Under the pieces are notes generated by a model. The model saw nothing but the letters and a program-made list of their open reading frames with translations, ran no database searches and was not told the origin of the DNA. DNA of 64,000 nucleotides, from NCBI RefSeq assembly GCF_000006765.1, contig NC_002516.2; one strand, 5' to 3'. Position 1 is the stretch's first letter, and the number at the start of each line of letters is the position of its first letter. Positions 56,145-59,440 of this stretch are shown here, in pieces. Position numbers and translations under genes: made by a program. The stretch is from Pseudomonas aeruginosa PAO1 (GTDB lineage Bacteria > Pseudomonadota > Gammaproteobacteria > Pseudomonadales > Pseudomonadaceae).

Positions 56145-56614
56145 GAGGGCCTCGCTGCGCACGTTGTGGTTGGCCCGATATTCGGCTCAAAGCGCGCCAG
56201 CGCCAAGCGACCTTTCTTCGCGAGTTCATTCCCGTGGCGCATGAACCCTCGTTCTTCGTTGCGGAGGAGGCCCCTTTCAGTGCTTCATCTGGACGAGAAG
56301 GGGACTGGAGCGTCATCGCAACGGGTCTCCTCTAGGCGGATCGGAGAGCGCGGTTTTCCGCTCGTTTCTCCATCTTCTCCTCAATTATGTCTATGTAACT
56401 ATTTCCTCTAGCAAAAAGGATTGTTCTTACATTATTTATAAATTTTCTTTGTTAGTTTTTCCTCGAGCAGTGCTGTTTGGCGGCTTCCTGAGGGGAAGAT
56501 TTTTGCTGGGGCGCTGAGATAGAGGACGAGTTTTTGTTTGGTCGTCGGTAAGTTTCGGCTTTTTGTCTTTTAGTCCGATGGGCAAGGGTACCAATGAGCA
56601 GGGAGGTTTTTAGG

Positions 56615-57400
56615 GTGAAATTTTTATCCGGTTTCTGGGAGCGCCGTCGTGCGAATGGCACTCCTCTAGTGTGTATCGAAGAGCGTGGCAGTGGTGCAGG
56701 CGAATTCTCGTCGGTGTCCCGTAGGGTTGAAACTGCTCCTGACGTACGTAGCGTTGCGTCTGCAGATTCGGAGCAGTGGATACATTCCCAGGAGTACGAG
56801 CTTTCTTTCTGGAAGGATAAATGGCCCTATCGCCATCTGTCTGTCGAGGAACTACAAGAGGCCCGGCATAAGGATGCAATGTGGTTTCTTGGGAAGATGG
56901 GGTTCACGTACGGCTCCTCGCATTATCGCTACGAAGGTTTTGAAGGTAAGGTTTTGGAAGTAGGTAGTGGGCCGATCGGCTTTTTCGAGAAGGTCGAAGG
57001 CGTGACAGTGACTGCCCAGGACTCATTGATGGGGCTGTATGCAGAGAATCTTCCATTCTCGATTCTCGGGGAAAGAGGTTCTTCTTGTTATATAAGGGAT
57101 GGTGTTGCCGATATAGAGAGTGCGTTCGATTTCGTCGTTTGCTCAAATGTGCTTGACCATACGGCCGACTGGATCCAGTTCCTGGTTGACTGTGTGGGCA
57201 GGTTGAGGACGGGCGGTGAGCTACTGTTGGTGACTGACTCTCGCGGAGTTCCAGCAATCGGGCATACACAGATATTCAGCCATGATCAACTGGTTCGTGT
57301 CTTGGAGTTGCTGGGAGCAAAGCAGTTCAAGGTGAAAGCCGTCGAGCGGGAGGATGGCGTTCACTGTGACTATCGTCATTATTTTCGGGTGGTTTTCTGA
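56615..57400 (+). CDS. Class I SAM-dependent methyltransferase-like protein (probable GTG start; in-frame ATG at 56594)
   Basis: KVLEVGSGPIG motif I, FDFVVCSNVLDH, LRTGGELLL; AGGGAGG SD 8 nt before GTG 56615. Confidence 0.78.
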   Translation: MKFLSGFWERRRANGTPLVCIEERGSGAGEFSSVSRRVETAPDVRSVASADSEQWIHSQEYELSFWKDKWPYRHLSVEELQEARHKDAMWFLGKMGFTYGSSHYRYEGFEGKVLEVGSGPIGFFEKVEGVTVTAQDSLMGLYAENLPFSILGERGSSCYIRDGVADIESAFDFVVCSNVLDHTADWIQFLVDCVGRLRTGGELLLVTDSRGVPAIGHTQIFSHDQLVRVLELLGAKQFKVKAVEREDGVHCDYRHYFRVVF

Positions 57401-57540
57401 ATTTCTCCGTGTCAATTGCTCTGCCTGGACGGGCGCTAGATTGGTATCGGCATTTCGGGGCTGGAGCCGGAAATATTGTGTTGGTGGCCAGTGGTTGGAT
57501 GGTTTTGATTGAAAAATAAAATATTATGAAAGGGATTTTC

Positions 57541-59001
57541 ATGAAGAAGTCTATGATTTCTTGTTTGTGTTTTGTGCTTCTTCTGCACTTTTTATTGGTT
57601 TCGAAAGTTGCGGCGGAAGTCTTTTGTGAGTCTTGTCTACAGGTGCGGGTGGAGCGCCCGCTAGTAGTTAGGGGTGGGTCTCACGAGCCTGGCCTGGATA
57701 CTAAGTTTTATGTAATAAAGCTCTCTGAAAATTTATTCAGAGGCTACAGTTCCGGAGGTGGTGATGCTTACGCAATAACCGGGCCGGAGGCCTGGTCTAT
57801 GGGCTGGCCTGCCAATAAGGTGTTAAGTAAAGGTGCCGCAGGGTCCTACAGCGAGTGTGGAGTATGGATAAATTCTCCGGTTAAGATCGGAGATGTCTAT
57901 GTTGCAGCCGTGCATCAGGAGCAAAAGTGCGACTACATCAATGGTGGGCAGGCGCACAAGTCAATGGGAGTATCGTTTTCTTATGACGGTCTATCTTGGG
58001 TTAATCCAATTACTGTGTTGACCAGCCCTGAGGCACCGAAGATGGGGACCCAATCTGGGGAGGGTGACTGTTCACTGGTTCGGGCCCCCGATGAAGGCTA
58101 CCTCTATATGTATTGTTTCAGGCCGGGGCGATGGGATAATATCGTGGCGCGTGCTCCGGAGGCATCTTATATGTTCCCGTCAAGCTGGAGGAAATTATAT
58201 AAAGGAAATTGGAGTGAGCCTGCGATTGGTGGTATGGCAGATAGTTTGGGTGCTATAGGGAGTAGTGTTGGGTATTGGCGGGCTGGACGTAAAGTTATTG
58301 CGCTTGATCTCGATCCATGGTTTGGCGGGATAAAGCTGTCATTGTCCTCGGATTATAAGAATTTTTTTACTCTTAAGGATCCTCTTGTTCCGTTTGTTAA
58401 AAATGATTGGGATCGAAATTTAATTGGGAAGTCAACTGACTTAATCGCATATGTGGGGGTCGTGAATCTATTTGGTGGCGGGAATCGAGTTGATAATTCC
58501 GGCTGGGGTATCACCTATACTTATATACCGCATGGAGGAACGCTAAAGGAAAAGTATCTCGTCTTTCAAGGGGTTAACATGAAGGTGGTTAGTGAACCTA
58601 AACAGGCTTCCGTAGGTTTGGCTCTTACCCGCTGGGAGCACAGGAGTGGGAAATACAGAGTTACTACTCTGCCTGTGGTGAGACAATCCGAGTACACCGA
58701 GCGTAATCGTATCGCATATCTCCTGACTCGTCCTGTCGTTGGTATTGAAACGCTTGAGGTGGAGGAGTGTGTGAATAGACAGGATCCCGATGATTATCTC
58801 GTGACTGATGCAGGAGGATGTGACGGGAGCGGACATGATAGAATCGCCACTATCGGTTGGGTGTATAAATATCCACAAAAAAATACGGTCCCTATTTATC
58901 GCTGTTACTCTCCGCTTGGCGAAAATCATTTTCTATCATCGAATGCAGGGTGTGATGATTTGGGAAGCTTGGAATGGAAGCTTGGATATGGTTTGAAGTA
59001 A
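57541..59001 (+). CDS. Secreted Cys-rich protein: propeller-like N-domain plus C-terminal triple repeat, 486 aa (alternative ATG 57526)
   Basis: Signal peptide MKKSMISCLCFVLLLHFLLVSKVAA; SYDGLSW, GEGDCSLV, WRKLYKGNWSEPAIGG; C-terminal VPIYRCY..NHFLS repeat. Confidence 0.8.
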   Translation: MKKSMISCLCFVLLLHFLLVSKVAAEVFCESCLQVRVERPLVVRGGSHEPGLDTKFYVIKLSENLFRGYSSGGGDAYAITGPEAWSMGWPANKVLSKGAAGSYSECGVWINSPVKIGDVYVAAVHQEQKCDYINGGQAHKSMGVSFSYDGLSWVNPITVLTSPEAPKMGTQSGEGDCSLVRAPDEGYLYMYCFRPGRWDNIVARAPEASYMFPSSWRKLYKGNWSEPAIGGMADSLGAIGSSVGYWRAGRKVIALDLDPWFGGIKLSLSSDYKNFFTLKDPLVPFVKNDWDRNLIGKSTDLIAYVGVVNLFGGGNRVDNSGWGITYTYIPHGGTLKEKYLVFQGVNMKVVSEPKQASVGLALTRWEHRSGKYRVTTLPVVRQSEYTERNRIAYLLTRPVVGIETLEVEECVNRQDPDDYLVTDAGGCDGSGHDRIATIGWVYKYPQKNTVPIYRCYSPLGENHFLSSNAGCDDLGSLEWKLGYGLK

Positions 59002-59125
59002 GGCAAAAATTTTCGATTGCCGCTTCAGTTGTTTCCACGTGTTCTTACGGGCTATTGGTTTGTAGCCCCCTGCAAGAGGCTGTCTGCCGAAATCATGCCG
59101 TCCGACGTGCAGCGACTGACATCGA

Positions 59126-59440
59126 TCAAATCAGCCACCACTTGAACAGGAAGAAGAACGCCATGCCCAGCAGCATGCTCGCCAGGGTATTGCGGGTATA
59201 GAGCACCAGCGCCACGGTGACTGCGCCGCTGACCAGGTAGGGATTGTCGTAGCCGAGGTCGATGCGGCCCTCGGGCATGAACACGATGGGGCCGCAGATC
59301 GCCGTGAGCATTCCCGGCACGGCGAAACCGAGGAACTGCCGCAGGTTGCTGCCGAGGCGGATCGGCAGGCGCGGTTCGAGGAACAGGTAGCGGTTGAGGA
59401 AGACGATCGCGCCCATCCCGAAGATCACTGCCCAGACCAT
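59126..59440 (-). CDS. azlD: AzlD-family small membrane subunit, 104 aa
   Basis: MVWAVIFGMGAIVFLNRYLF, FAVPGMLTAI; overlaps the azlC-like gene. Confidence 0.8.
   Translation of the reverse strand: MVWAVIFGMGAIVFLNRYLFLEPRLPIRLGSNLRQFLGFAVPGMLTAICGPIVFMPEGRIDLGYDNPYLVSGAVTVALVLYTRNTLASMLLGMAFFFLFKWWLI

Follow-up and report, generated by a model that had tools for sequence, protein, structure and literature searches.

A strain-variable gene of foreign origin in Pseudomonas aeruginosa encodes a predicted exported, glycan-active protein combining a five-bladed β-propeller with a DUF5648-type module

The locus and its gene

The window considered here is a stretch of 64,000 nucleotides from Pseudomonas aeruginosa PAO1 (contig NC_002516.2). 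The gene under study lies with a methyltransferase gene in a small islet of aberrant composition, downstream of the methyltransferase and between the gene for a ThDP enzyme and azlCD. The features of the region are as follows:

56360..59057 (no strand): low-GC islet of 2.7 kb, 46-52% GC against 66-72% in its flanks, comprising the methyltransferase and target genes
56594..57400 (+): class I SAM-dependent methyltransferase, the upstream neighbor, read here as 268 aa; NCBI often gives a 173-aa form
57437 to about 59057-59105 (no strand): strain-variable segment, made up of the target gene together with about 100 nt 5' and about 55 nt 3' of it
57495..57522 (+): previously proposed candidate promoter, TTGGAT-N16-TAAAAT
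57530..57535 (+): likely ribosome-binding site AAGGGA, 5 nt 5' of the start codon
57541..59001 (+): complete target ORF of 486 aa plus stop, a two-domain protein carrying the database label 'hypothetical protein [Pseudomonas aeruginosa]'
57541..57615 (+): predicted Sec signal peptide, aa 1-25, with the predicted cleavage between VAA and EVF
57616..58605 (+): five-bladed β-propeller, aa 26-355, delineated from the AlphaFold2 (AF2) model, Foldseek and conservation
57979..57999 (+): Asp-box S-x-D-G-x-x-W, aa 147-153, located in blade II in the hairpin between strands 3 and 4
58606..58998 (+): three-repeat DUF5648-type domain, aa 356-486, with units 356-400, 401-445 and 446-486

The ORF is intact, as an earlier sequence-only reading of this DNA had it, and its product can be aligned end to end with 41 relatives. 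We take the ATG at 57541 as the start because AAGGGA precedes it by 5 nt and because the databases mostly carry the 486-aa form, which is NCBI's majority call; a second in-frame ATG, at 57526, would lengthen the product by five residues and is not preceded by a ribosome-binding site. The candidate promoter had also been proposed in that reading: the hexamers are indeed present but agree with the consensus at 8 of 12 positions and fall below the threshold of a sigma-70 scan, at which shuffled sequence yields 3.2 sites in the same region, i.e. the match does not rise above chance.

The N-terminus, with MKK, a 17-residue hydrophobic core and then VAA followed by E (cut after residue 25), has the form of a standard cleavable Sec signal, in agreement with the export suggested earlier. 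Hydrophobic N-termini occupy the equivalent place in the alignment of the relatives, and in the AF2 model residues 5-21 form a lone helix of low pLDDT. The protein is also rich in cysteine, as had been noticed: two of the 12 cysteines belong to the signal peptide, and the 10 of the mature protein fall into five conserved pairs (29/32, 106/130, 177/192, 410/427 and 455/471).

An N-terminal propeller with glycoside hydrolases as structural neighbors

In single-sequence searches the protein reached no Pfam or NCBIfam threshold, retrieved nothing at threshold from the PDB sequences and gave no match to DUF4185 (PF13810) at E<=1. Its fold is evident from the AF2 model built with the family alignment (pLDDT 92.5, pTM 0.89): DSSP assigns five blades of four strands each, at about residues 57-95, 107-160, 175-227, 242-284 and 301-349, and the ring is closed by an N-terminal strand at 33-45. 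A Foldseek search against the PDB yields propeller glycosidases exclusively. Its best match is the GH183 enzyme EndoMA1 (8ic1_A; E=7e-10, TM 0.41), followed by members of GH117, GH43, GH62 (TM up to 0.65, target-normalised), GH32 and GH159, with sialidases lower down; the GH183, GH117, GH43, GH62 and GH32 matches are each five-bladed propeller glycosidases. The propeller with an Asp-box that had been proposed for this region from sequence is thereby borne out, with glycoside hydrolases as its structural neighbors. By sequence, no curated threshold of any glycoside hydrolase family is reached.

The Asp-box (S147-x-D149-G150-x-x-W153) sits in the hairpin that is the canonical position of this motif and is one residue shorter than in most relatives; a degenerate second copy is found at aa 269-275. 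The other motifs to which the sequence-only reading had drawn attention, H125-x-E127-x-x-C130, G175-D176-C177 and W216-x-K218, are likewise conserved in the family. Across 111 divergent representatives, D53, W109, H125, E127, W216 and Y304 are 96-98% conserved, R204 and K218 88-89%, D149 85% and D176 79%; E174, of the GEGDC motif, is conserved in only 46%. In propellers the innermost strands point their N-terminal ends, and the second strands their C-terminal ends, to the funnel on the top side. Given this usual topology, D53, W109, H125/E127, D176 and Y304 should be disposed around the central cavity at the top face of the modeled domain.

The C-terminal domain is a degenerate three-unit repeat related to DUF5648

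The equivalent residues W365, C410 and C455, encoded at 58633, 58768 and 58903, are spaced by exactly 135 nt, and this regularity had suggested three repeats of 45 aa. In the single sequence no such period is detectable: an ungapped BLOSUM62 comparison of the sequence with itself at a shift of 45 scores -42, and the maxima of shuffled sequences lie at -27 ± 9 (P=0.97), and any two units share only 2-6 identical residues. Comparison of unit profiles excised from the 42-member family alignment, on the other hand, places all three units in register (P=4e-4, 7e-3 and 1.5e-2), and both AF2 models, including one of the C-terminal domain alone (pLDDT 94.7), display three β-β-short helix-β units starting at 358, 404 and 449. 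A conserved cysteine pair recurs in unit 2 (410/427) and unit 3 (455/471). Since the single sequence lacks the signal and yet the family profiles and both models show the units, the repeat is, as far as profiles and models tell, real but ancient and degenerate; the exact spacing reflects structural equivalence and not sequence similarity.

The sequence-only reading had associated these repeats both with DUF5648 and with the β-trefoil, and only the former association stands. The window protein itself scores 13.1 bits against DUF5648 (PF18885; E=0.11, aa 442-468, within the third unit), and 21 of 42 relatives match below threshold; in two members, P0184 (35.8 bits) and P0160 (26.7 bits), the homologous domain exceeds Pfam's 25-bit cut-off. 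The modeled domain also has the (β3-α)3 architecture of DUF5648, which has been described as a three-bladed module implicated in glycan recognition in GH70 enzymes (PMC11299179), as a glycan-recognition module of the same architecture in the O-antigen-targeting BSAP toxins (bioRxiv 10.1101/2025.01.06.631476), and, in a GH25 endolysin, as a domain that putatively binds the cell wall (bioRxiv 10.64898/2026.04.26.720912). As in the GH70 α-glucanotransferases and the Bacteroidales toxins BSAP-2 and BSAP-3, three β-β-α-β units of about 45 aa make up the C-terminal end of a protein that is secreted and acts, or here is predicted to act, on glycans. The window protein differs from those modules in that its helices have shrunk to about 3 residues, its first unit is strongly degenerate, its score is only 13 bits, and units 2 and 3 each have a disulfide-type cysteine pair. 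Other matches to this domain are few: the sole PDB match is a part of 9uj0_A (TMq 0.61), from an entry titled 'Aegerolysin-L pore' in which a literature search did not identify the matching domain, and in BFVD there is one phage protein at TMq 0.73 with two others near 0.5. A word search with the domain alone returned only proteins of the same family.

A β-trefoil lectin module would account for three units spaced by about 45 aa, but has virtually no probability on the structural evidence. The model contains nine strands instead of twelve along with three short helices, its Foldseek comparison with IL-1β and the BEL trefoil yields TM 0.18-0.21 at an rmsd of 13-16 Å, the QxW motif is absent from aa 356-486, and the relatives match DUF5648. 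Structure prediction and Foldseek had been expected to reveal a propeller plus a trefoil; the outcome was a five-bladed propeller without one.

A large and unclassified family

A word search retrieved 114 relatives of about 484 aa. The closest cluster, 99% identical, consists of 900 member sequences from P. aeruginosa; next come a homolog from Metapseudomonas furukawaii (61% identical) and a second P. aeruginosa type (59%), and the remaining relatives, e.g. from Devosia, Pelagibacterium and Variovorax, are 35-43% identical. An exhaustive profile search extends the family to 2575 representatives (clustered at 50% identity) at E<=1e-3, 298 of them at E<=1e-30. The propeller and the C-terminal domain nearly always occur together as a unit. 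To this unit are variously fused PG_binding_1 (in three of ten members scanned), dockerin, a GH53-like domain, and EGF, CBM49 and TSP3 repeats; one fusion form combines an Rv2525c-like glycoside-hydrolase-like domain with seven copies of the C-terminal domain. Partners of these kinds are typical of extracellular carbohydrate-active proteins. The fused members P0146 and P0252 lie on short contigs. The family is large, uncharacterized and unclassified. The PADLOC collection contained no model matching either the window protein or the adjacent methyltransferase.

Foreign origin and strain variability in Pseudomonas

The gene has 47% GC and a GC3 of 45%, as against 67% GC for the window and a GC3 of 88% for one neighboring gene. 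A comparable mismatch with the surroundings is seen in M. furukawaii (50% vs 65%) and in the second P. aeruginosa type (53% vs 61%). In M. furukawaii the homolog also adjoins a methyltransferase gene, in reversed order and with an IS4 transposase alongside; this methyltransferase is 61% identical to that of the window. Comparison of P. aeruginosa loci shows that the variable segment is present in the window and in L062-L065, whereas L059-L061 have in its place about 137-179 bp of mostly unrelated DNA while retaining the methyltransferase; in one further strain the methyltransferase is interrupted by an IS3-type element. A 59%-identical paralog (P0003) resides on an integrative and conjugative element (ICE), flanked by transfer genes of the TraG/DtrJ type on one side and by a divergently oriented hcp-vgrG pair on the other; as it has its own Sec signal, a role as type VI cargo is unlikely. 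The gene is therefore a foreign, horizontally acquired and strain-variable accessory cassette in Pseudomonas. The only repeats found flanking the islet are two 22-nt stretches that agree at 19 positions (56334-56355 and 59355-59376), a match probably due to chance as the second copy lies within azlD.

The gene within upp/holdfast-like clusters of Hyphomicrobiales

A different setting is seen in alphaproteobacteria of soil and sea, namely Devosia, Pelagibacterium and other Hyphomicrobiales, to which belong all 34 of the 46 loci (drawn from contigs of one genome per species) where the gene is placed directly between a Bac_transf initiating transferase gene and a Wzy_C/WaaL-like gene. In the conserved cluster, a polysaccharide deacetylase and Wzz are encoded on one strand, and Poly_export, GT4, Bac_transf, the target and Wzy_C on the other, with intergenic gaps of a few nucleotides. 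In one locus (L004) the target stop codon overlaps the Wzy_C start, and in another (L050), where the cluster is rearranged, the target still abuts both Wzy_C and Bac_transf.

The domain content and order of this cluster are those of uppB-F as described for the unipolar polysaccharide of Agrobacterium, in which nothing separates uppE from uppF (bioRxiv 10.1101/2021.04.22.440995). Matched by domain content, the Devosiaceae and Agrobacterium uppABCDEF clusters share PCP, OPX, GT4, PHPT and WaaL-like components in the same order; they differ in that Devosiaceae have the target gene between the uppE and uppF positions and, in the place that the acetyltransferase UppA takes in Agrobacterium, a deacetylase. 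The window locus is not part of such a cluster, its neighbors being the methyltransferase, AzlCD and the ThDP enzyme. The gene is solitary in Archangium, Vitiosangium, Variovorax, Dyella and a Thermoanaerobaculia MAG, where it is host-like in GC; no neighbor common to the loci outside Hyphomicrobiales emerged when the flanking ORFs were clustered all against all and ten neighbors were scanned with Pfam. Neither the foreign, strain-variable nature of the Pseudomonas cassette nor this polysaccharide-cluster context had figured in the sequence-only reading.

Functional prediction and its alternatives

Taken jointly, these observations lead to a proposal that we consider somewhat more probable than all its alternatives together: the protein would be a Sec-exported, glycan-active enzyme of propeller plus DUF5648-type architecture, probably a glycoside hydrolase awaiting classification, with an ancestry in adhesin-polysaccharide systems and a secondary existence as a cassette in Pseudomonas. 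The mature protein, presumably stabilized by disulfides, would act on a glycan, most likely as a glycoside hydrolase of a so far unclassified family. Its propeller would carry the candidate active site, with D53, W109, H125, E127, D176 and Y304 around the funnel, and the three-bladed β-α module of the DUF5648 type would grip the polysaccharide. The earlier suggestion of an uncharacterized glycoside hydrolase or lectin with a trefoil is retained as to the propeller and its glycoside hydrolase neighbors and is to be dropped as to the trefoil (TM about 0.2).

In Devosiaceae and related Hyphomicrobiales the native role may be the processing, in the periplasm or at the surface, of a Wzx/Wzy-type surface adhesin polysaccharide of the unipolar-polysaccharide or holdfast-like kind, by analogy with the hydrolases found alongside the machineries for Psl, Pel, PNAG and cellulose. 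PslG, the hydrolase domain of PelA, the C-terminal domain of PgaB and BcsZ are exported glycosidases encoded within the cluster of the polymer that they trim, and exopolysaccharide systems that possess a deacetylase commonly come with a dedicated hydrolase of their own (e.g. Pel and PNAG). A role as a processing enzyme hence fits the Devosiaceae cluster, in which the gene is accompanied by a deacetylase much as PslG, PelA, PgaB and BcsZ often adjoin one. The likeness does not extend to the fold, as those enzymes adopt (β/α) barrels or (α/α)6 folds and none is a propeller, or to the P. aeruginosa copy, which stands outside any polysaccharide cluster. Having become detached from the cluster, this copy would presumably act on a related glycan, either the cell's own or that of neighboring cells.

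Some observations count against an enzyme. The only recurrent neighbor in P. aeruginosa is a cytoplasmic methyltransferase, which has no obvious link to a periplasmic hydrolase and is kept by strains devoid of the target gene; outside Hyphomicrobiales there are no conserved neighbors; and the fold taken alone is compatible with a lectin or scaffold.

The alternatives divide according to whether catalysis is denied altogether or assigned to an established family. A non-catalytic polysaccharide-binding or scaffold protein, in which the conserved polar residues bind sugar or a metal, appears unlikely to us, though it is the chief competitor of the enzyme. Lectins exist among five-bladed propellers, DUF5648 is itself a binding module, and the tight coupling of the gene to the Wzy_C/WaaL-like gene, with stop and start overlapping or nearly abutting, is what might be expected if the protein worked alongside the WaaL-like membrane protein, in the periplasm or at the surface, to capture, anchor or pass on the adhesin polysaccharide; UppF has indeed been proposed to link the polysaccharide to the surface in Agrobacterium (bioRxiv 10.1101/2021.04.22.440995). 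Against this, the strong structural neighbors found by Foldseek are all enzymes, a set of Asp, His, Glu and Tyr residues maintained at 96-98% over diverse contexts and fusions is more typical of catalysis, and fusions to peptidoglycan-binding and dockerin domains are typical of enzymes.

If the protein is an enzyme, its closest structural match would suggest a true GH183 (DUF4185) endo-D-arabinanase acting on D-arabinofuranose polymers. EndoMA1 (PDB 8hhv, 8ic1) is similarly secreted and composed of an N-terminal five-bladed propeller and a C-terminal domain of carbohydrate-binding type; 18 of 42 relatives match DUF4185 weakly; and in both proteins blade I opens with a conserved Asp, D53 lying in the region of the EndoMA1 nucleophile Asp33, which acts with Asp51 and Glu243 (PMC10509167). 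These matches are nevertheless limited to 20-25 bits against a gathering score of 39.5 and to profile positions of about 127-260, mainly the Asp-box region, with none in the window protein, which like its family stays below the Pfam threshold; EndoMA1 is structurally similar at a TM of only 0.41 and is missed by the PDB profile search. Moreover, its C-terminal domain is a β-sandwich and not a DUF5648-type β-α three-blade, its D/D/E residues differ from the D/H/E/Y set of the window family, and the setting to which the latter is native, an adhesin cluster with GT4, PHPT and deacetylase genes, is not that of a D-arabinan system. All this renders membership in GH183 very improbable. The same holds for an exo-α-sialidase of GH33, the label that UniRef gives to a relative from Devosia sediminis. 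GH33 sialidases are marked by a six-bladed propeller, an arginine triad, an F/YRIP motif and several Asp-boxes. An Asp-box is present here, and sialidases are the best PDB sequence matches of the broad family profile (E=1.4e-4), ahead of GH130-like glycosidases (E=0.005, residues 116-276). The sialidase matches are, however, confined to residues 131-207, and the weak sialidase/BNR and DUF4185 signals alike stem largely from the Asp-box region; BNR_2 matches one of 42 relatives, below the cut-off. The AF2 model has five blades and not six, one Asp-box is canonical and the other degenerate, there is no F/YRIP motif, and R204 is the only conserved Arg in place of a triad, so that a sialidase, too, is to be regarded as a very slim prospect.

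Returning to the unclassified glycoside hydrolase favored above, a bolder version of it can be formulated, which is speculative and on balance improbable: a new family might be dedicated to trimming or releasing polar adhesin polysaccharides of the unipolar-polysaccharide or holdfast kind and might repeatedly have been captured by Pseudomonas on mobile DNA, there to serve as a stand-alone exported enzyme and remodel or remove the adhesins of the cell itself or of its neighbors. The mobile settings in question are the islet, the IS-flanked locus and the ICE.

Implications

An enzyme made up of a propeller and a binding module is an already familiar architecture. If the prediction is right, more than a thousand sequence clusters of unassigned exported proteins would constitute a candidate for a new family of glycoside hydrolases with defined conserved residues, and a dedicated processing enzyme, without a counterpart in Agrobacterium, would be added to the upp/holdfast-type pathway of Devosiaceae. 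For P. aeruginosa, a 'hypothetical' label would conceal a strain-variable, mobile, exported and predicted glycan-active protein, of potential relevance to the diversity of matrix and surface glycans among its strains.

Presence-absence variation and mobility of the family

Across P. aeruginosa genomes the locus occurs in two forms, with the gene for the 486-aa propeller protein either present (window 57437-59105, and loci L062-L065 on other contigs) or absent (loci L059-L061 and L066). In the gene-less form the corresponding segment is substituted by ~137-179 bp of mostly unrelated DNA and the upstream methyltransferase gene is retained; the left flank shows 2.5% divergence between the two forms, and the right flank diverges less. 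The low-GC islet that holds both genes is further bracketed by a 22-nt direct repeat, identical at 19/22 positions:

56334-56355: first copy
59355-59376: second copy, within azlD

As the second copy falls inside azlD, the repeat pair may be due to chance.

A paralogue with 59% identity to the 486-aa protein (P0003) is carried on P. aeruginosa contigs as cargo of an integrative conjugative element (L067-L069) with genes for TraG-D_C, DtrJ-like and DUF2859 proteins. It is adjoined, in divergent orientation, by an orphan hcp-vgrG pair.

Neighboring genes

The methyltransferase (56594-57400, + strand) aligns with its Metapseudomonas furukawaii counterpart at 61% identity over ~264 aa (tblastn), and its first 95 N-terminal residues are conserved there at the protein level. 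Many NCBI records present only a 173-aa form starting at an internal Met. Separately, in P. aeruginosa GCA_013240375.1 (L066), likewise without the 486-aa gene, the methyltransferase gene is split by an IS3-family (rve) insertion sequence.

In M. furukawaii, a divergent gene lies upstream of the homologue of the 486-aa protein gene:

L001 6139-7464; L002 1744-3069: 441-aa protein

This protein has no match in Pfam and no counterpart in the P. aeruginosa window.

Structural matches and long architectures

Among PDB structures, the DUF5648-type C-domain matches only part of 9uj0_A (chain name 'Aegerolysin-L pore'; TMq 0.61), and in BFVD it matched three unnamed large phage proteins (A0A8S0I430, M4T1X6 and A0A0C5AE55; TMq 0.48-0.73). 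The exhaustive profile search additionally recovered very long family members of 1052-1786 aa (P0240, P0251, P0257 and P0264), which display EGF-like, thrombospondin type 3 and CBM49 domains. These associations suggest that the family module is also found in secreted proteins that are eukaryote-like or of unusual complexity.
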